Assembly (NCBI GenBank): GCA_028826165.1
Contig: JAPDFW010000074.1
Coordinates: forward strand, 186,001-250,000
Reading direction: 5' to 3'
Origin: Anaeramoeba ignava BMAN
Taxonomy: Eukaryota; Protista; Anaeramoebae
DNA length: 64,000 nucleotides
Part shown: piece by piece, positions 4,601 through 17,249 of the stretch
How positions within the stretch are numbered: position 1 is the stretch's first letter
Layout of the letters: every line of letters starts with the position of its first letter
Program-made: the position numbers and the translations under genes
The notes under the pieces: model-generated
Seen by the model: the letters and a program-made list of their open reading frames with translations, nothing else
Database searches by the model: none
Told to the model about the DNA's origin: nothing

Positions 4601-6659
4601 CAGTAATACAAGCATTATCAAATGGAATTACATTTAGTTCTAATAGAAGACATATGCAACCAATAAATGAAGATATAACAGGAAGATTTGCAGATAGATC
4701 AATATTTGTAGATCAATTATCAGTACAAATTCATTTACAAATTCAATTACAAATTCATTTATAAAATTATTTATAAAATTAAATATAAAATTAAATATAA
4801 AATTATTTATAAAATTAATTATAAAATTATTTATAAAATTATTTATAAAATTATTTATAAAATTATTTATAAAATTATTTATAAAATTATTTATAAAATT
4901 ATTTATAAAATTATTTATAAAATTATTTATAAAATTATTTATAAAATTATTTATAAAATTATTTATAAAATTATTTATAAAATTATTTATAAAATTATTT
5001 ATAAAATTATTTATAAAATTATTATTTATAAAATTAATTATAAAATTATTTATAAAATTAATTATAAAATTAAATATAAAATTATTTATAAAATTAAATA
5101 TAAAATTAATTATGAAATTATTTATAAAATTATTTATAAAATTATTTATAAAACTATTTATAAAATTATTTATAAAATTATTTATAAAATTAAATATAAA
5201 ATTAAATATAAAATTATTTATATAATTATTTATAAAATTATTTATAAAATTATTTATAAAATTAATTATAAAATTATTTATAAAATTAAATATAAAATTA
5301 AATATAAAATTAAATATAAAATTAAATATAAAATTAATTATAAAATTAAATATAAAATTATAAAATTAAATATAAAATTATAAAATTAAATATAAAATTA
5401 TAAAATTAATTATAAAATTAATTATAAAATTATATATAAAATTATTTATAAAATTATTTATAAAATTAAATATAAAATTAAATATAAAATTAATTATAAA
5501 ATTATTAATAAAATTAAATATAAAATTATATATAAAATTATTTATAAAATTATATATAAAATTATTTATAAAATTATTTATAAAATTAAATATAAAATTA
5601 AATATAAAATTAAATATAAAATTATAAAATTAATTATAAAATTTTAAGGATGATTCAAATGTTAATGAAAAAGATCTTTATATTCCACTTGCAAATCTAC
5701 CAGATACAAAACAAGAAGGGGAAATCAAATATGCATTTATTAAATCAATCTATTCAATAAACAAACCAAAAGGATCATTTAACGAAATACAATTCAAAGA
5801 AAGAATAGAATCAGTCTTACAAATTGTAAGCAAAACAAGCCCAGAATTTGTAACAAAACAAGCAATAGAAACAGTTGATGATTTAATTTCTCAAATTCAA
5901 ACATTTAGTGACGGAATTCCTCGATCAGAAAAAGCTTTCCAAACTTTATTTATTCTTCTAAAAGAATATAAAACATCAGTTTTTTATCAACAACAAAAAC
6001 AACAAGAAGAAAAACTTAAAGAAGAATTATCAAAAAAAACAGGAGAAACATCAAAACAAAAACACAAAAAAAATCTTCATATTGAAATTGATGATGAAAA
6101 TTTAGCAATCCAAAATTTGGATTTTGAAGAACAATTAAAAAGATATGATTCACAAATGGAACCTCAATTAAATTTTGGAAATGAAACTGAAAATCAAAAT
6201 AAATCACAAAATCAAAATCAAACTCAAAAACAAGAACAATCAAATCAAAAACAACAACAACAACAACCGCAAACAGAACAAAAACCTGTTCAACATTCTC
6301 AACAAAATACTCAAGATGATTGGGATGACATCAAATCAGCTCGTGTTCAAAAACAAACTTTCTGTTATTTTTCTTCTCAGAAATCAAGTTTCAAAAAAAG
6401 ATTTATTATTTTGCAATCTTTTTCAATAGGCGTTTTTAAAGACCAACCAATTTTCTCTAAAAATAAGAAACCTTTATTGTCTGTTCCAATTACAAAGAAA
6501 ATGAAAATTGCTCAATTAGATACTTATAATAAAAAAAAGAATGTTTTAACTTTAAGCTCCAAACAAGAATCTTCTGAATTTGCTTTTTCTTTTGATCATA
6601 AATCTGATTTAACAGAATGGTTTTTACAAATTAAAAAACTTCGATCTCAAATGAATTAA
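1637..6659 (+). CDS. RasGAP-domain protein with C-terminal PH domain (multi-exon, 5' part outside window)
   Basis: Arginine-finger LFRTND and FLR motif (GGFIFLRLICPAIVAP) in ORF 3523-4764; PH-like C-terminus (FKKRFIILQ...FSFDHKSDLTEWFLQI). Approximate exons by GT-AG and frame continuity: 1637-2269, 2615-2939, ~3029-3164, 3412-4207, 4556-4722, 5649-6659. Confidence 0.88.
2272..2600. repeat. Intronic 11-12-bp repeat (AAATAAATATTY)n
   Basis: Fills intron 2270-2614 of the RasGAP gene. Confidence 0.85.
4210..5645. repeat. Two intronic arrays of the same (TTTATAAAATTA)n repeat (4210-4540 and 4760-5645) flanking a 167-nt exon
   Basis: Same unit as 1-1633; introns 4208-4555 and 4723-5648 bounded by GT/AG. 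Confidence 0.9.
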
Positions 6660-6765: not shown

Positions 6766-9700
6766 TTAATTTAAATTGGATTCGTTCTTTCTTTCTTCCT
6801 TCATCAAATCATCATAAGTTTTTTCAAGAACCATTCTCATTCTACTTTTTTCATTTAATTGATAATAATCAATTAAATCAACAAACTCATCAAAATTATC
6901 AATTGAGTTTTTACTTGAAATATTAATTTCATCCAAATAAAGAAAACGAACTAATTTCTGAACAGTTTCAAAAGATTTACCAGAATAATCATGAACTTGA
7001 TTTGAATCATCTTCAACACTAAGAAACATTCCTCTATAAAGTTCACTTCTGGCAACAAGAATAAGTTTATCAACATGAATGGAATGATTAGAATTAGAAA
7101 AAAGAATTGTAAAGTTTTTTGTGCTTTGATTTTGGAACAAAATATCCAAATCACGAATTATTCCGTTTCTTCCTTTTTTTCTTTCAATCCATTCTTCGGG
7201 TTTTTCATAAATTTCACTGAGAATTTCAGATACAATTTTTTGACTTTCAATAATTGGCTTGCTTTTCGGAAAAATTCCTGAATAAATGAATTGCATAAAA
7301 ATCTTCGCATCTTCAACTTCTTGTTTTGATAATATAAGAAGCATCTTATTGAAAATTTGCTCGATTTGTTGGTTATTTAATTCTCCATTATTAAGTCTCA
7401 ATTTGACAATTAAAGAATGAATGGAAAAATTCCCGCCAATGCATTGAACATTTTGATCAGTAAATTCTTGTCTTTGGAAAAGATTATTCATGTCGGTGCA
7501 AATGGAGAAATGCGAATCAAGAATCTGCTGGATTTCTTCAGTTACAACAAAATTTTCTGAATCGTAAACTTGAGCGTTATAAAGAAGAAGTAACTTGACC
7601 ATTTTTTGATCTTTGAGAAAACATGCATAATAAAGCGGACTTTTTTTCACTGGGAAATCAACAAGTGCGCCATTTTTCAATAAACATTCTGCATTTCTTG
7701 TGTTTCTTTTCTCAATGCAATAAGTAAGTGCTGTTTTCGACATTTCGTTTTGCTCATTTAATTCGGCTCCTTTTGAAATGAGAAATTCAAGCACTTTCTC
7801 GCTTGCGTTATTCAAACAAGCGTTCATTAAAGGCGTGTATTTTCTTTGATCAAGACAATTCACATCTGCTCCTTTTTCAATGAGTATTTTGTAGCATTCA
7901 ATGTTGTTGCTTACAGAGGATATTCTATGAAGAGGTGTTTGTTTTCGAGGTGAATATAAATTTATATCAGGGTAATTCTCAATAAATAACCTCAGAATAT
8001 CTGGATTTGGATCTTTATCACAGAGATAGTGAATCGGATAAAGACCGATCAATGACTTTTCCTGAAAGTTTGGTTTCATTTCGATTATTTTCTTGATGAA
8101 ATCCGATTCGTAATATCTTTTTATTAAGGAAATGAAAAGTGGCTCATTATCAATTTTCGTATTGAAATCAATCATATGATTTTGCAAAAGAAGACTGGTT
8201 TTAGCAGAAGATAAATATGCTGATGTGATTACAGAAAAATAGCTTTTTCGATATTTCTGAATTAAAAAATGTGATAGTTTTTCGTCTGAGTTTACTATCG
8301 CAAGACTTAAACTTGATGGAGATCGAGCTGGTTTCTCTGAAAACTTTGCCTTTTTTGAAAGCAATAATTCAACAATTTCTTGGTCGAGTGTTTTCCAATC
8401 CACAAAAGAAAATATAGATTTTTTATTATTTGTTTTTAATTTCACCGTTGATCCCTTTTTAATTAGAAATTCAATCACTTCAAAATTTGGATAAAATTCA
8501 CATGCAGAAAACAAAGGGGTTTTCCCATAATTATTCTGGATATTAACAATCTTTGAGTTGCATAATAGTTCCAAATCTTCTAAATTGAACGATCTTTTGA
8601 TAAGATAATGGAGTGGTGTGTTTTTTTGTGAATCTACTTCATTGATATTAACACCTGAATCAACTAATAAACGAATAATTTTGGGATTGAATTGAATTTT
8701 TGATAATAAAACATGAAGCGGATTCCTTGAAAATTGACCTTGAGTATTTGGATCTGCTCCATGCTTAATTAGACTCTGAATCAACGAAAAACTGGACGAA
8801 TTCTGACAAAGAGAATGAAGAGGAGTGCTATGTTGGCTATTTTTGGAGTCTAAACGAGAGCCATTTTCAATAAGTAAGTCAATCATTTTCGAAGCTTCTT
8901 TCTTATTTTTCTTTAATCGGATGTTTGAGCATAGTTTGTGCAAAGGTGTATTGTTTGAGGAATCAAGTTCATTCAATGCGGTCTTGCCAATAACATCAAT
9001 CAATTTCTTGAGTATTTCATAATTAGGAAATCCATAACAAGCCAAATGAAGAACATTTTGGTTCAGATCTGTTTTCAGATTCGGATCTGCTCCAGATTCA
9101 AGCAAAATATTGAGAATATTGATATTCTGTTGATGAAAAGTTGTGGTAAGATAAGCATGAAGAGGAGTGTAATTTTTGGAGTCTCTGGAATTAATTTGAA
9201 TTCCTTTTCCAATTAATAGATTCAAAATTTCCTCATCAACAACATTTTTACATGCAAGATGAAGATAATTTTCGTTTTGACTTGTTGTATAACTAAAATC
9301 TTTTGTATTCTTGATTAAAAACTTGATAATATCAGGATCATTCCTGGAACGTAATGCCAATGAAAGATATGTGTATGGCGCTCGAAAAACAGAAAAATGT
9401 TTATCAAAATTTGTTTCGTCGGTAATAAGCATTTTCAGAACTTCGAAATTAACGGGTGTTTTTATTGCATAAAATAAAGGATCTCTTCCTTGAGTATCGG
9501 TTTTGTTCAAATCCAAAAAATTATTGATGAAATATTTAATCATTTTGAGATTAGAGAACTTCATTCGGTATCGAAAAATGCGTGTAAGAAACATATTTTG
9601 ATATAAAATAGATGGCAAATGGCTCATGCTTTCTTCATCAATAAGCATTTCAATAATCTCGATTCTTTTGTTGTTCAGCATTTCATAAAAAACAGGAATG

Positions 9701-11121
9701 TATTTTTGCGAGTCTTTTAGGTGAGTGTCAGCTCCTCTTGCAAGTAAAAACTCAATCAATTCCTTTCTTGCTCCCTTTTCGCACGCATAATGTAAAGGTG
9801 TTTTGTTTGATATTGATATTTCATTGACATCAAATCCAAGATCATCCACTAAATACTCCAAAATATCCATTGGAGCATCTGAAATACAAGCAAAATGCAA
9901 TGCTGTTAATGATTGAGAATCTCTGGAATAAGGATCAACACCCATCTCCACAAAATATTGCAAAATAGGTTTTCCATTAGGGTTTTCGCAAGCAAAATGA
10001 AATGGAGATTTGTGAGAACTTGTTCGAATGAAATAATTATTTCCCGTTTTCTCAACCAGAAATTTAATTGTTTCCAGATCAGTACTTTTGCTGCATGCTA
10101 ATTGAATAGTTGTTTTTTTGATAGTTGATTGAAATTCCAATTGTGCTCCATATTGAAATAGTAATCTGATAATTTTGGAGTTGCAGTGCTTAGTGCAAGC
10201 AAGAAAAATTGGCGATTGAGTTGAAATGTAAGAGTTGTGCTGAGCATTAGCCCCATTTTTGAGAAGAAATTCAATCACTTCAGGATTTGGATTGTATTCA
10301 CATGCTTTAAGAATGGGTGTTTGTCTTGATGTGTTTTGTGCATGAATGTTTGCTCCATGTTTTAAAAGCAAAGCAATATTTTCCACTTTCGATTCGTTCA
10401 TAACCAAATAATGCAACGGAATTTGCATTCTTTTATCTCGAAGATTGGGTTTTGTTCCCGAAGAAATGAGAAGAGAAATAATTTCGTTGCTTGGTTTTTC
10501 GCTTTCGCAAGCAAAATGAAGAGGGTTTTTCCGGTCTTTATCAATTGCATTGATATCTGCTCCTTTTCCAATCAAATATTTGACGCATTTTATATTGGAA
10601 TAAAGACATGCGTAATGAAGTGGAGTTTTTTGGTATTGATCTTTAAAATGAATTTGTTTTTGATCATAAAAAAGCGTATCAAGTATTTCTAAATCTTCAA
10701 TATACATGCAAGCATAATGAAGAGGCTTGCATCTTTTGCTATCCTTAGCTTTTATATCGCTTCCTTTTGCAATAAGTAATTTAATAATTTGAGTATCACT
10801 TGAATTTATCAACGCATTATGAAGTGCAGTTTGATCAAATTTATCTTTCAAATTGACATCAGCTCCATTTTCAATTAATAATTCAATTAGTTCAAAACTT
10901 GTTGGTTGTTTTAATGCGTTGTTAAGTGGGGTTTCTTGGTTTCTATCAAATAAATTAACTTCTGCTTTTTTGGAAAGAAGGATTTTGGTAATTTCAATAT
11001 TATTTGATAAACAACTTAAATGTAAAGCGGTTTTTCCTTCTAAATCTTGGAAATTAATATCTCCTTCAAATTTCTCAATTTCTTCTATATTTTTATCTTC
11101 AATTAATTCCAATAAATCCAT
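6766..11121 (-). CDS. Ankyrin-repeat protein (~30 repeats) with C-terminal tandem BTB-like module, intronless
   Basis: Repeated TPLHxAC...LLxxGADxN; C-terminal IHSLIVKLR...FIYSG and VDKLILVARSELYRGMFLSV...FLYLD. Start placed at MDLLELIE (11121): the 11178 ATG adds a U-rich leader, and an Inr-like motif lies at 11141-11150. Confidence 0.9.
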   Translation of the reverse strand: MDLLELIEDKNIEEIEKFEGDINFQDLEGKTALHLSCLSNNIEITKILLSKKAEVNLFDRNQETPLNNALKQPTSFELIELLIENGADVNLKDKFDQTALHNALINSSDTQIIKLLIAKGSDIKAKDSKRCKPLHYACMYIEDLEILDTLFYDQKQIHFKDQYQKTPLHYACLYSNIKCVKYLIGKGADINAIDKDRKNPLHFACESEKPSNEIISLLISSGTKPNLRDKRMQIPLHYLVMNESKVENIALLLKHGANIHAQNTSRQTPILKACEYNPNPEVIEFLLKNGANAQHNSYISTQSPIFLACTKHCNSKIIRLLFQYGAQLEFQSTIKKTTIQLACSKSTDLETIKFLVEKTGNNYFIRTSSHKSPFHFACENPNGKPILQYFVEMGVDPYSRDSQSLTALHFACISDAPMDILEYLVDDLGFDVNEISISNKTPLHYACEKGARKELIEFLLARGADTHLKDSQKYIPVFYEMLNNKRIEIIEMLIDEESMSHLPSILYQNMFLTRIFRYRMKFSNLKMIKYFINNFLDLNKTDTQGRDPLFYAIKTPVNFEVLKMLITDETNFDKHFSVFRAPYTYLSLALRSRNDPDIIKFLIKNTKDFSYTTSQNENYLHLACKNVVDEEILNLLIGKGIQINSRDSKNYTPLHAYLTTTFHQQNINILNILLESGADPNLKTDLNQNVLHLACYGFPNYEILKKLIDVIGKTALNELDSSNNTPLHKLCSNIRLKKNKKEASKMIDLLIENGSRLDSKNSQHSTPLHSLCQNSSSFSLIQSLIKHGADPNTQGQFSRNPLHVLLSKIQFNPKIIRLLVDSGVNINEVDSQKNTPLHYLIKRSFNLEDLELLCNSKIVNIQNNYGKTPLFSACEFYPNFEVIEFLIKKGSTVKLKTNNKKSIFSFVDWKTLDQEIVELLLSKKAKFSEKPARSPSSLSLAIVNSDEKLSHFLIQKYRKSYFSVITSAYLSSAKTSLLLQNHMIDFNTKIDNEPLFISLIKRYYESDFIKKIIEMKPNFQEKSLIGLYPIHYLCDKDPNPDILRLFIENYPDINLYSPRKQTPLHRISSVSNNIECYKILIEKGADVNCLDQRKYTPLMNACLNNASEKVLEFLISKGAELNEQNEMSKTALTYCIEKRNTRNAECLLKNGALVDFPVKKSPLYYACFLKDQKMVKLLLLYNAQVYDSENFVVTEEIQQILDSHFSICTDMNNLFQRQEFTDQNVQCIGGNFSIHSLIVKLRLNNGELNNQQIEQIFNKMLLILSKQEVEDAKIFMQFIYSGIFPKSKPIIESQKIVSEILSEIYEKPEEWIERKKGRNGIIRDLDILFQNQSTKNFTILFSNSNHSIHVDKLILVARSELYRGMFLSVEDDSNQVHDYSGKSFETVQKLVRFLYLDEINISSKNSIDNFDEFVDLIDYYQLNEKSRMRMVLEKTYDDLMKEERKNESNLN

Positions 11122-11223
11122 AAATAATAAAAAAAGAAAAAAAATGAAAATTAAAATTCGAAAAAAATATTTTTTCATTTTTTCATTTTTTCTTTTCTTT
11201 TTTTAATTTCTTAATAAAAAAAA

Positions 11224-14200
11224 ATGTCTAAAACTGGTTTTTTAAAGAATTTTAGAATTAAAATTGGAGGTGATCAAGTTCCAAATCTTCAAGAAAAAGA
11301 AGATAAAGATAAAAATGAAAATGAAAATGAAAATGAAAATGAAAATAAAAATGGAAATGAAAATATGGATCGTAAATTGACATTTACAAACAGATTTATT
11401 GATGTTCACACAAAAGCCAATCAAAAAGAGAAAATTAAAAAAACAAATGAAATTGACAATACAAAAAAATCAAATGAAAATGAAAATGAAAATAAAAATG
11501 AAAATAAAAATGAAAATGAAAATGAAAATGAAATTGAAAATGAAAATGAAATTGACAACACAAAAAAATCAAATAAAGATGACAAAAAAGATGATTTATT
11601 TGGATTCATTGACTTTGAAGACTTAATTCGGGATGACTTTGACGAAGAAGATTTTGATGAAAAAATTGATTCACTTTTACAAATCGAAAAAAACGAAAAA
11701 TTTGAGGATTTACTTCATCAAGCAGAAAATAAATTAGGAATTCATTTAGAAAGCACTGAAAATGAAAGAGAAGATGATCCAGATATTTTAAACATTGAAA
11801 ATCAATTTTCAGATATTGATTATCTTTCAGAAAATGAAGAACCAAATGATGAACAAGAAAATCTAATGGAAGATTCAATTGAATTAAATAATGAAGATGA
11901 AAAAGAAAAATCAGATTCAAAAAATGATTCAGAAGTTTCAAAACATCCAAAAAAAACCATAATTCGAATGGATTTAGCAAAAATTATTTCTCCAGTATTA
12001 ATATTAATTTCAAAATGAATATTAAAATGAATTTTAAATTTAATATTTATTATTTTTAATTTAATATTAATTTATTATTAGACTACCAAAGATAATTCTA
12101 ATTCAAGATCTAAATTTAGGACTGTTAGTATTACAACTTTCCAATTAAAATTTAAAATGAAATTTAAAATGAAATGAAAAATTAAAAATTAAAAATTAAA
12201 ATTTCAATTAAAATGAAAAAGATTAAATCAATGAAATCAATTCATACAGCTTTCCAATTTGAAGAAAATGAAACTGATGCTCTTGAAAATGAACAAATTA
12301 TAGATATTGCTGAAAAAGTTACTTGGATATGTCCACTTCCAACAGGAAATACTCTACCTTTAGTTGGTGAATTACATCTAACAAATTTTAGATTAATTTT
12401 TGTTCCAAAAGAATTAACTGCTCATGTAGTTTTAAAATATTATGCTCATAATCAAAAAATAATTTGAATCATTATAATAATTTTTTTTTGATTTGATTTC
12501 AAAATAATTTAGAATAAAGTTTATAATCGTCAAAGAAATCCAGAATTCACATTAGGAGCAATTCAAAAAGTTGAAAAATTTGGTGGACAATCTTCAAGTC
12601 GAGGTTTGTTGATGATATTTTTATATTCCAGTTTATAATCAATAATAATCTCAAAATATAAATATAAATTTATTAAAAAATTATAAAGGAAAACTTGCAT
12701 ATGGATTTGATGTGACAAGCAATGAATTCCAAACAGCAAAATTTTGTTTTGTTAGAAAAAATCATAGCAGAAGACATTTATATTTAAATTTAATTGCAAA
12801 ATCATTTAATTCAAATATGACAAAATCATTTGCTTTTGAACATAAAACAAAAAAAGTTATAGATTCTGGTTGGGAAATATTTGATATTAGAAAAGAATTT
12901 CAAAGACAAGGTAGAAAGAAATAAAACAAAATGAATTAATTTGAAAATGAATTAATTTGGAAATAAATTAATTTGGAAATAAATTAATTTGGAAATAAAT
13001 TAATTTGGAAATAAATTAATTTGGAAATAAATTAATTTGAAAATAAATTAATTTGGAAATAAATTAATTTGAAAATCAATTAATTTGGAAAATAAATTAA
13101 TTTGGAAATAAATTAATTTGGAAATAAATTAATTTGGAAATAAATTAATTTGGAAAATAAATTAATTTGGAAATCAATTAATTTGGAAATTAATTTGGAA
13201 ATCAATTAATTTGGAAATCAATTAATTTGGAAATAAATTAATTTGAAAATAAATTAATTTGGATATCAATTAATTTGGAAATCAATTAATATAAAAATGA
13301 ATTAATTTGGAAATAAATTAATTTGGAAATAAATTAATTTGGAAATAAATTAATTTGAAAATCAATTAATTTGGAAATCAATTAATTTGAAAATCAAATT
13401 AATTTGAAAATCAATTAATATAAAAGGAATACCAAATACTGAATGGGTTATTTCAGGAATCAATCAAAAATACTCTTTATGTTCAACTTATCCTAATAGA
13501 ATTGTAATTCCAGCAAAAATTTCTGAGAGATATTTAAAATCTGTTGCACATTTTCGAACAGAAAATCGATTACCACTTTTAACATGGAAAGCTCCAGATA
13601 GACCAAGTGCATTAATACGTTCATCTCAACCAAAAACATGTAGAAATGAAAATTGAAATTTAAACAAATAACAAATTGATAAATTGAAAAATTGATAAAA
13701 ATTTTTTCTGTTTTTTCAAAAAGATTCCAAAAAATCAAAAGGTGCAGAAGATGAAAAATTTATCACTCAAATATTTCGGACAAACCCAAATGGATCTGCA
13801 TTAAGAGTATTAGATTGCAGATCACAAACTGAAGTTTCTAATTCTGCAAAAGAATTAGGATTTGAATCACCAGATAAATACAGAGAAGTTATCCATGAAT
13901 TTCTTGGAATTGAAAAACCTCAAATTGTTCGTGAAAGTTATAACAAACTTAGAAATTTATGTCTCACTTCAATTTTCCAAGACAGAAAATGGTTTTCTTC
14001 AATGGAAGAAACAAATTGGCTTCAAATGATCCAAAAAATTATGGAAGCAGCAAAAAAAGTTGTTAATTATATGAAAGGAGATTACTCTGTTCTTGTCCAT
14101 TCTACTTATGGATGGGATAGAAGTGTTACCGAAGATACTCCTGTTATTTGTCGTTTATTTGGTTCAAAAATTATCATTCGCAAAATTTCTCAACTTGCAA

Positions 14201-15958
14201 AAGAAAATAAATGGGAAATGGAAAATGAATTTATTTCAAGAGAAATTGCAGAACCCTTAGAATCTCTTGAAGTGTGGACTGAAAAAGGTTTCACAAAAGT
14301 AAACCAAATTATCCGCCACCAAACTAATGAAGATATTATTAGAGTTTCTACACAAACAGCATCTGTGGATGTGACAACAGGTCATAGTTTACTTGATCCA
14401 AATGGATCCAAAATTCGTTCTGATTCTGTTGTTATTGGAGATCCACTTTTGCACGTGGATTGTCCAAAATTGGAAGAAAATGAAATATCAAATTTATCAA
14501 AGGAAATTTCTTGGATTTTTGGTTTGTTTTGTGCAAATGGAAATTTGAATACAAAAGAAAAAGTATTAGAAAAGAAATGGAATATTCTAAGTATGAATAA
14601 TCAGGTTCTTAATAAAGCAAAATCTATTATTGAAGAATTGATTTTTAAACAAGAAATGAACCAATTTTCTGGAACTGAAATTGTTATTTTGTGTGCTGAA
14701 AATGAAGGAAATACATTCCAATTAATAATAAATCCAAATGCGGATACGCAATTAAAACATAGATTTATTGAATATTGGAAAAATATATTCTGTAAAATAC
14801 ATGAAAATGATGAAGAATCAACAGATAAAATTGAAATTCCTGATTTTATTTTTAATTGTGAAAACAAAATCAAATCAAAATTTTGGGAAGGATTCTCAAG
14901 TGGAGTTAAAACAAACTTTGGAAATTGGCAACAAAAAAACATGAGCAAAATACAATTTAAATCAACAAATACATCTTTAATTTGCGGAACATATCTTTTG
15001 GCACAATATTTCGGATACAAACCAACAATAAGAATTGAGAATAATATCAAGGAATATGAAAATTGCGAGTATTCTCTTAGATTGTGGAAAAAAGCAAAAA
15101 ACAAAAACAAAACAGAATATGATCAAATTACCAATCTAACAAGATATTCTCTTCCAAATAAAAAATGTTATGTTTATGATATATCAACAGAAAATCATCA
15201 TTTCCATGCAGGAATAGGAAGAATGGTAGTTCACAACACTGCGCAAGTTTGTGCACTCGCAGAACTTTTTCAAGATCCTTATTACAGAACAATAACTGGA
15301 TTTGAAGTTTTAATTGAAAAGGAATGGATCAGTTTTGGACATCCGTTTTTTTCCAATAATGGAAATAGTTTTCATACATCCAAAAATAAGAATAACAGTG
15401 AAAATGATTTTTATCCAATATTTATTCAATGGTTGGATTGTGTTTATCAATGCTTGATTCAATTTCCTAATTATCTGGAATTTAATGAAGCTTTTCTGCT
15501 TGCGATTGCAGAAAATATTTATTCTTTAAGATTTGGAACATTTTTATTTGTTTCAGAAAAAGAAAGAAATCGTTTAAAAACTCAAGAAAATTGTTATTCT
15601 TTATGGACATTTCTGAATGAAAATCGAGAGAATTATATCAATCCATCATTTATGAAATCTAATTTTGTACTTGAACCAAGCACTTCAATGCTTCATATTA
15701 AATTTTGGACAAAGTAAATTATTTTATCAAGAACAACAAAAAATGATTTATTATTTATTTTTTAATTTATTTTTTAGTTATTATCTCCAATATTTATTCC
15801 CATCAATTATTGAAGAATTTGGAACTAAAGAAAATTTCATTCTTAGTAAATGTTTGGATATTTCTGAAAGAATAAATGAAATGGAAAAGGAAGAGCAAGA
15901 AATTATGAAAGAAATTGAAGAAATGAAGAAAAAATTAAAGAAGAAAGATGATAATTAA
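11224..15958 (+). CDS. Myotubularin-related protein (acidic N-terminus, PH-GRAM, phosphatase fold, coiled coil), intein-containing, probable pseudophosphatase
   Basis: GRAM-like GELHLTNFRLIF; myotubularin motifs GWEIFDIRKEFQRQG, LCSTYP, FRTENRLPLLTW, DPYYRTITGFEVLIEKEWISFGHPF, PIFIQWLDCVYQ, FGTFL. Approximate exons: 11224-11994, 12082-12123, 12222-12425, 12513-12603, 12689-12910, 13427-13639, 13724-15713, 15778-15958. Confidence 0.93.
12930..13420. repeat. Intronic 16-bp repeat (AATTAATTTGGAAATM)n
   Basis: Fills intron 12911-13426 of the myotubularin gene. Confidence 0.9.
14122..15237 (+). mobile_element. Intein (372 aa, class-1 motifs, degenerate LAGLIDADG homing endonuclease) in the myotubularin active-site loop
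   Basis: Block A SVTEDTPV (Ser1), block B VDVTTGH (TxxH), block F YVYDIST, block G VVHN followed by Thr+1. Removal restores HSTYGWDR/TAQVCAL, collinear with the myotubularin consensus HCSDGWDRTAQ. Central IFGLFCANG, IPDFIFN...FWEGF and LLAQYFG resemble blocks C, D/E and H. Confidence 0.96.
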
Positions 15959-16064: not shown

Positions 16065-17249
16065 TCAATTTTTTGTTTTTTCTCCGTTTAATTCTTTCAA
16101 CTCTTCTAAACAACTATCATCTTTATCGATACTATTATAATCAATCAAACATTGTTTAAGATTTTTCTTTTGTTTCAAAGCTTGAATAATAATTCTTGCT
16201 CCATTTCCAGTGATAAAATTTCCATTAACATTAATAACTTCAATAACAGGATTTTCTTTGATTGCTTTTGCAATTTCTTCAGTGCAAAGATCTGAAATGT
16301 AATTTGAAGGCGCATCCAATATTTTGAGGCTTTGATTTAAATTGGATGATAAAATTGTGAAAATTTCTTTTAATCCTTCATCTCCAAGTGAACATGAACC
16401 AATTAAGATATGCTCAATAGATTGATTTTTGGAAAGGAAATTTGCAATTAAACTTCCTCCCTTTTCTTTCAAAGTTTTGATGCCTGACATTTTTAATATT
16501 TTCAAGGATGGAAGCTTTGATAAACTTGCCAAAATGGGTTCGAATTCATCGCAAGTAAAAGGAATTCCTGTTAAATTTAAAGAAGAAATATTGTTATTGA
16601 TTTCGATCCAATTTGAAATTTGTTGATAAGAATCCATAACTGGATTAAAAGCAAAAGAAATATCAATAATTGAATCAACTTTGTTTTGTATTAAGGATTG
16701 GAAAAAGATTTCTGCTCCTTTTGAAGTAATTCCATTTGATCTTAAATCAATAATTTTCAGTGATTTATTAAATGGGAAAATTTTTGATAAAGAAATAATT
16801 CCTTCATCACTTAAATTAGTTATTCCTAAATTGAGATCCTCGATTGTATGATTTTGCATCAGAAGTTCGCCAAGTTTTTGATAAGATTGTTCTCCAAAAT
16901 CATTTTGATTTAAATCAAGTTTTTTCACTGTGGAATTTTTGAGTAATCCATTTAGAATTGAACAAATACTTGAATCATTGAAATGATTTGAATGAAGATC
17001 AAGTTGAATAATTGATTTATTTTTTTCAATCATTTTTTCTATTAATTTCGCAGATTTTTCTTGAATTTCTTCTGATACTTCAAAACAAGCTTCAATCTTT
17101 AAATTTTTCACTGTTTGATTTAATTCCATTGTTTGACAAAATGTTTCGAAATTTTGGATCAATTCTTCTGATTGCCAAAAAGAAAGAGAATCCATTTTTT
17201 CATCTTGTTTTTGAAGTGGTTGAATAATTTCTTGTAAAAAATTTTCCAT
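16065..17249 (-). CDS. RNI-like leucine-rich repeat protein, intronless
   Basis: ~28-aa LRRs (LDLHSNHFND, LDLNQNDFGE, IDLRSNGITSKGA, INVNGNFITGNGA). Confidence 0.88.
   Translation of the reverse strand: MENFLQEIIQPLQKQDEKMDSLSFWQSEELIQNFETFCQTMELNQTVKNLKIEACFEVSEEIQEKSAKLIEKMIEKNKSIIQLDLHSNHFNDSSICSILNGLLKNSTVKKLDLNQNDFGEQSYQKLGELLMQNHTIEDLNLGITNLSDEGIISLSKIFPFNKSLKIIDLRSNGITSKGAEIFFQSLIQNKVDSIIDISFAFNPVMDSYQQISNWIEINNNISSLNLTGIPFTCDEFEPILASLSKLPSLKILKMSGIKTLKEKGGSLIANFLSKNQSIEHILIGSCSLGDEGLKEIFTILSSNLNQSLKILDAPSNYISDLCTEEIAKAIKENPVIEVINVNGNFITGNGARIIIQALKQKKNLKQCLIDYNSIDKDDSCLEELKELNGEKTKN

Follow-up and report, generated by a model that had tools for sequence, protein, structure and literature searches.

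To our knowledge, nuclear inteins are seldom met beyond a small set of housekeeping enzymes, and phosphoinositide phosphatases are not typical hosts. A described relative of the element reported here is the intein of the Mimivirus family-B DNA polymerase (PolB), a pol-c allele of 351 aa at the site YGD/TDS (the slash marks the insertion point), which has Ser1, a terminal Asn, Thr at the +1 position, and a LAGLIDADG domain (PMC549080). In Anaeramoeba ignava BMAN, 103 inteins were reported in 79 host proteins, and 18 of the host families had not been linked to inteins before (Gallot-Lavallee et al. 2023, PMC10710043). The main text of that study does not mention myotubularin, and our literature search returned no paper on a natural intein in a myotubularin. 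Here, we analyzed a 64-kb stretch of the A. ignava BMAN genome (contig JAPDFW010000074.1, hereafter the window), in which a myotubularin-related gene carries an insert at positions 14122-15237 of the forward strand. We conclude, with a probability of about 0.85, that the insert is a canonical class 1 intein in a myotubularin paralog, that its endonuclease has decayed, and that the host copy is likely catalytically dead.

The insert comprises 1116 nt (372 codons) and shares the reading frame of the myotubularin exon on both sides. Its own frame contains no stop, whereas each of the other five frames contains 9 to 39. Given an insert composition of 42% A and 30% T, in a window with 19% GC, the chance of 372 stop-free codons is about 3e-16. 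The initial annotation, made from the sequence alone, had described a 1116-nt in-frame insertion; its coordinates were exact, and the frame is indeed stop-free.

The host gene was called at 11224-15958 (+) in assembly GCA_028826165.1, with a product of 1237 aa. Of the 4735 nt that the gene spans, 3714 nt are coding, which leaves 1021 nt of non-coding sequence. As this remainder is shorter than the 1116-nt insert, the depositors' annotation must retain the intein as coding sequence. A myotubularin phosphatase domain was recognized in the host gene (Pfam Myotub-related PF06602, 1.2e-49), and the extein pieces matched the structures of MTMR2, MTMR6, MTMR1, and MTMR8 in a PDB search. A single exon at 13724-15713 (+), with splice sites AG at 13722-13723 and GT at 15714-15715, encodes the last part of the N-extein, all of the intein, and the greater part of the C-extein. 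The exon limits agree with the tblastn results of the paralogs P0011, P0001, and P0012. Searches were run on single-exon references, namely 13699-15714, 13723-14121, 14122-15237, and 15238-15711.

The insertion is precise at the protein level. The exon alignment comprised nine Anaeramoeba myotubularins and five from other eukaryotes, and it shows a clean gap between ...GWDR and TAQ... when the window copy is set against intein-less myotubularins of Anaeramoeba, insects, mammals, and a stramenopile. In separate PDB searches, the N-extein match to the MTMR2 chain 1zsq_A stops at residue 354, and the C-extein match (6.7e-40) begins at residue 355. The C-extein, at 15238-15713 (+), opens with the +1 nucleophile Thr (15238-15240) of T-A-Q. 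The excision that had been proposed to join GWDR to TAQ is thus borne out by the alignment gap and by the contiguity at MTMR2 residues 354/355. For the extein comparison, the contiguous exon was used and the intein columns were dropped from the alignment; the extein part is 45% identical to marsupial MTM1 and 40-49% identical to the Anaeramoeba paralogs.

The residues needed for splicing are all in place. The N-terminal Hint half (residues 1-115, 14122-14466, +) starts S-V-T-E-D-T-P-V, with Ser1 at 14122-14124 and the block B residues T85 to H88 at 14374-14385. The C-terminal Hint half (residues 331-372, 15112-15237, +) contains block F, V-Y-D353-I-S-T-E-N-H-H-F, with D353 at 15178-15180, and ends in H371-N372 (15232-15237), followed by Thr. 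We scored residue conservation in a 61-sequence alignment of the intein family. S1, T85, H88, D353, and N372 occur in 61/61 members and H371 in 60/61, and the window copy keeps all of them. The Ser start, the TxxH motif, the block F Asp, and the terminal His-Asn before Thr listed in the initial annotation were therefore all found. With a Ser1 nucleophile, T-x-x-H, block F Asp, His-Asn, Thr+1, and a Hint fold, the insert has the features of a class 1 intein, and its self-splicing is inferred from these residues.

Homology and fold point in the same direction. The C-terminal intein profile TIGR01443 (intein_Cterm) scored 17.4 bits, marginally above a cutoff of 15.6. A phmmer search of 1.84 billion representatives retrieved 1668 proteins at E<=1e-3, 964 at E<=1e-10, and 39 at E<=1e-30. 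An AlphaFold2 model of the intein, built on the 61-sequence alignment, reached a mean predicted local distance difference test score (pLDDT) of 89 and a predicted template modeling score of 0.90; its N-terminal Hint half is rich in beta-strands, with pLDDT of 88-98. The top PDB matches of the model in Foldseek were the TliVMA, PhoVMA, PI-PkoII, PI-PfuI, and PI-SceI inteins, with E from 3e-18 to 2e-9. Mini-inteins matched the splicing halves of the model, and I-DmoI matched its central domain. Taken together, homology, the retained splicing residues, the modeled Hint and LAGLIDADG domains, and the precise insertion support the intein interpretation.

The sequence family of the insert is that of the pol-c inteins (PolB, YGD/TDS). 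Per-domain scoring covered the best 150 of the phmmer relatives. Among the 70 best domain matches, almost all are at YGD/TDS, with Ser1 and Thr+1; the exceptions are three myotubularin paralogs and a few shifted or fragmentary sites. The hosts of the relatives are family-B DNA polymerases (Pfam DNA_pol_B), and PolB of the Aureococcus anophagefferens virus is among the named ones. Among the relatives recognized by fold are the DNA polymerases of Pandoravirus hades, an unknown phycodnavirus, Marseillevirus LCMAC103, and Megavirus courdo11, with template modeling scores, normalized to the query, TM(query), of 0.6-0.8. The insert is therefore kin to the YGD/TDS inteins, although its own site is GWDR/TAQ and not polymerase motif C. 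Because the host is a PF06602 protein and the site is GWDR/TAQ, the insert is a relative by descent and non-allelic, and the kinship indicates that a non-allelic jump brought the intein into the myotubularin gene. We also considered microhomology between the two target sites but discarded it, as the myotubularin site has, by hand count, only 6/18 nt in common with the Mimivirus site of PMC549080.

Some members of the intein family sit at a site displaced by two or three residues, namely the metagenomic PolB sequences P0003, P0160, and, apparently, P0167 and P0194. In P0160, the site is shifted, YGDTD/S...HN/SCM, and the C-terminal junctions of P0167 (HN/SVM) and P0194 (HN/SCM) resemble it. P0003 contains two back-to-back inteins with only T-D-T between them.

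Between the Hint halves lies a degenerate LAGLIDADG homing-endonuclease domain (residues about 120-325, 14479-15096, +), supported by the alignment and by fold matches. Its two LAGLIDADG helices are present (residues 127-139 and 248-266 in the model), the alpha-beta-beta-alpha-beta-beta-alpha fold is recognizable, and I-DmoI matches have a TM(target) of about 0.6. In motif 1 (14512-14541, +), Asn139 (14536-14538) replaces the acidic residue, and in motif 2 (14881-14910, +), Val262 (14905-14907) replaces Asp. The catalytic columns hold D/E in 54/61 family members for motif 1 and D in 49/61 for motif 2. Both catalytic acidic residues are thus gone from the window copy, and the same two positions are altered in the three paralogous myotubularin inteins. 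The insert had been called full-length, which is true of its domain architecture but not of its endonuclease, which lacks both catalytic acidic residues. Among the four myotubularin inteins, the Hint halves are 51% identical and the endonuclease domain 26%, compared with 50% and 44% among PolB inteins. The decay of the endonuclease suggests that the intein is probably no longer mobile. From these sequences, homing is probably extinct, whereas splicing appears to be retained under selection.

The host P-loop departs from the active consensus. The N-extein half of the loop, V-H-S-T-Y-G-W-D-R, is encoded at 14095-14121 (+), and the Arg of this CX5R-type loop (14119-14121), the last residue before the intein, is kept. 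The codon of the catalytic Cys reads TCT (14101-14103), which encodes Ser. The motif is V-H-C-S-[DH]-G-W-D-R in all ten active myotubularins that were aligned, and the window copy has C to S, S to T, and D to Y. Three adjacent codons off the consensus argue against a single sequencing error. The myotubularin signature named in the initial annotation stands for GWDR/TAQ, but the P-loop is VHSTYGWDR and not VHCSDGWDR, which the annotation had missed. In Cys-based phosphatases, the change of Cys to Ser abolishes catalysis and often preserves substrate binding. With the catalytic Cys replaced by Ser, the spliced host product is most likely a catalytically dead pseudophosphatase, possibly still lipid-binding. 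It had also been proposed that the P-loop cannot form until splicing takes place; this is structurally reasonable, but the loop so formed would be non-catalytic, as it has no catalytic Cys.

A related intein occupies the identical R/T site in at least three more A. ignava myotubularins, P0001, P0011, and P0016. P0001 (935 aa) and P0011 (1137 aa) have the P-loop CSDGWDR, and P0016 (1109 aa) has the inactive SANGRDR. NCBI names P0001 and P0016 as intein-containing myotubularin-related precursors. These names at the same site indicate that this type of allele is already catalogued in myotubularin, a possibility that the initial annotation had raised. P0011 is named a myotubularin-related protein only, although it contains an intein of 370 aa at residues 494-863, an inconsistency of annotation. 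The intein is absent from P0012 of A. ignava and from five A. flamelloides myotubularins. In P0012, the empty site is uninterrupted; 39/48 nt (81%) match the flanks of the window gene when these are joined, and there is no intron close by.

Identity among the four myotubularin inteins is 37-39%, and that of the extein parts compared is 41-56%. In a quick maximum-likelihood tree, the branch separating the four from 44 polymerase inteins received 100 in the Shimodaira-Hasegawa-like approximate likelihood ratio test. The extein tree (281 columns) is unresolved; the intein-bearing four are not a clade on the free tree, which implies 3 changes, and the approximately unbiased (AU) test did not reject a single clade of the four (p 0.13). 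One ancient invasion followed by gene duplications is the simplest reading, with ancient homing between paralogs as the alternative.

Several points weigh against the conclusion that the insert is a splicing-competent intein. The Pfam profile Intein_splicing (PF14890) scored 30.9 bits, under its gathering score of 35.8, and the direct PDB sequence match of the intein is weak, with E 0.64 to PI-PkoII. Undoubted PolB relatives score alike on PF14890, at 29-42 bits. Taken by themselves, such weak Pfam and PDB results for the intein sequence would not settle its identity. The proposed check with Hint and LAGLIDADG profiles thus gave TIGR01443 over its cutoff and PF14890 under its gathering score, and the combination of Hint and LAGLIDADG domains came from the model. 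Splicing was verified in three Anaeramoeba inteins only, and their hosts are not myotubularins (PMC10710043). The four myotubularin inteins have long branches and a skewed composition, and their grouping could be inflated. Moreover, inteins are usually argued to stay splicing-competent through selection on an essential active site, and this argument loses force when the host lacks its catalytic Cys.

In a reading that we consider unlikely, the insert is a splicing-dead relic and the gene gives a permanently interrupted protein or is becoming a pseudogene. The missing catalytic Cys, the degenerate endonuclease, and the long intein branch (1.89 changes per site) would fit such a relic, and pseudogenized inteins were reported in Anaeramoeba genomes (PMC10710043). 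A relic would not be expected, however, to retain every residue of the splicing mechanism and an intact 372-codon frame in so GC-poor a window, nor to have Hint halves conserved among the four paralogs to the same degree as those of the PolB inteins. The extein identity to marsupial MTM1 and to the Anaeramoeba paralogs also speaks against decay of the host. That the segment is instead a spliceosomal intron with an incidental open frame is barely credible. The host gene has several introns, one of 516 nt, but the segment borders read AG...AC and not GT...AG, and the sole nearby in-frame GT...AG pair seen by eye (14125...15228) would, if used, remove the conserved TAQ motif. The improbably long stop-free frame, the strong protein homology to inteins, and the deposited annotation of the segment as coding sequence are likewise at odds with an intron.

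Ongoing mobility, with the endonuclease still homing between myotubularin paralogs, is also very improbable. Four paralogs are occupied at the same site, the extein tree does not unite them, and spread of inteins between paralogs is documented in Anaeramoeba (PMC10710043). Nevertheless, both LAGLIDADG catalytic acidic residues are replaced in the window copy and altered in the other three, the endonuclease domain has diverged among the paralogs to the identity given above, and the empty site of P0012 persists uninterrupted in the same genome. The AU test, in addition, leaves a single clade unrejected. With the inteins just 37-39% identical to one another, any spread would be ancient. We therefore retain the class 1 intein with a decayed endonuclease as the preferred reading.

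Under the intein reading, splicing would begin with an N-O acyl shift at Ser1, followed by transesterification onto the side chain of Thr+1. Asn372 would then cyclize with the help of His371, and after a final O-N shift the 372-residue intein would be free and ...GWDR joined to TAQ..., which would complete the myotubularin fold. The intein likely persists only because the folded host protein needs precise splicing.

The existence of the intein adds nothing new in itself, as a massive expansion was published for A. ignava and the myotubularin allele is labelled in the deposited annotation. The dead P-loop, the decay of the endonuclease, and the pol-c kinship are modest additions to a type of system already known. 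Of the four paralogs with an intein, two, the window copy among them, lack the catalytic Cys and keep all splicing residues. Such Cys-less carriers amount to a natural experiment on the hypothesis that inteins are kept because they lie in indispensable active sites. The family also documents cleanly the transfer of a pol-c polymerase intein to an unrelated P-loop whose DNA bears no obvious similarity to the polymerase target. In a speculative and improbable extension, a giant-virus-type polymerase intein colonized a lipid-signaling family, stayed splicing-competent even in non-catalytic copies, and was retained for a lipid- or partner-binding fold or co-opted as a post-translational switch. 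If true, retention would depend on fold completion or on the timing of a regulatory pseudophosphatase, rather than on the protection of an essential active site.

Further features of the host gene were recorded. Downstream of the intein-bearing exon, an intron at 15714-15777 (+) is followed by the last exon at 15778-15958 (+), which is backed by tblastn of the paralogs. This short intron lies just past a conserved F-W-x-x motif near the C-terminus, and its position is common to P0012 (L003 about 4800-4870), where the corresponding segment reads through in frame with about 21 extra codons by tblastn. P0001 appears to have the intron also, a position common to old paralogs. The upstream intron of 516 nt is located at 12911-13426 (+), with GT at 12911-12912 and AG at 13425-13426. 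Most of it is filled by a tandem repeat at 12929-13419, with 30.8 copies of the 16-bp unit AAATAAATTAATTTGG at 90% matches; within the tract, GC content is as low as 13% and the GC skew as high as +0.8. The annotated first exon region (11224-12018) is of low complexity, with Asn-Glu repeats that derive from (GAAAAT)n / (AAATGA)n arrays at 11293-11555. Nothing corresponds to this region in P0001 or P0012, and it is only a putative part of the host gene.

The gene is flanked on one side by a 1470-aa single-ORF (open reading frame) ankyrin-repeat protein at 6766-11178 (-) and on the other by a single-exon gene at 16065-17249 (-) for a 394-aa leucine-rich-repeat (LRR) protein, of the TMOD/LMOD-type LRR in precomputed Pfam. 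The product of the single-exon gene (16068-17249 in this comparison) is identical on contig JAPDFW010000074.1 of GCA_028826165.1, and subtracting 186000 from the record positions gives those of the window. No link to the intein was seen for either neighbor. Within the 64-kb window, there is no other intein of the family of 14122-15237, and there are no transfer RNA genes.

Set against known systems, the insert shares its two-domain fold with TliVMA/PhoVMA (7qsu, 7qst), PI-PkoII (2cw7), PI-PfuI (1dq3), and PI-SceI (1vde), at template modeling scores of 0.4-0.6 and 11-16% identity. These inteins have active endonucleases, whereas the window copy has lost two catalytic carboxylates. On the host side, the top PDB match of the N-extein was the engineered inactive MTMR2 C417S chain (1zsq/1zvr), V-V-V-H-S-S-D-G-W-D-R, which likewise has Ser at the position of the catalytic Cys and retains the P-loop Arg. 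The MTMR2 change was engineered, whereas the change in the window copy is natural and comes with S to T and D to Y in the next two residues. P0098 of A. flamelloides is another apparently dead paralog; its P-loop, I-Q-E-M-E-C-F-D-R, differs from that of the window copy, and it has no intein, so that catalysis was apparently lost in an intein-free copy of the myotubularin family too.

The nearest comparison within the genome is with P0001, P0011, and P0016, which share the host family, the DR/T site, Ser1, His-Asn, Thr+1, and a degenerate LAGLIDADG domain. Their inteins are 37-39% and the extein parts compared 45-49% identical to those of the window copy, and identities this low indicate old paralogs and not alleles. 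The catalytic CSDGWDR is kept in P0001 and P0011, and it is lost in the window copy (STYGWDR) and in P0016 (SANGRDR). Beyond the myotubularins, the pol-c PolB inteins are the closest sequence family; they score 100-154 bits per domain, and their Hint halves are 44% identical to those of the window intein. They resemble the window intein in Ser1, terminal Asn, and Thr+1, in a length of about 340-370 aa, and in the combination of Hint and LAGLIDADG domains. The site of the PolB inteins is polymerase motif C, whereas the host and site in the window, the P-loop of a lipid phosphatase, are unrelated to it. Most PolB members also retain the catalytic residues of the endonuclease, which the window intein has lost.

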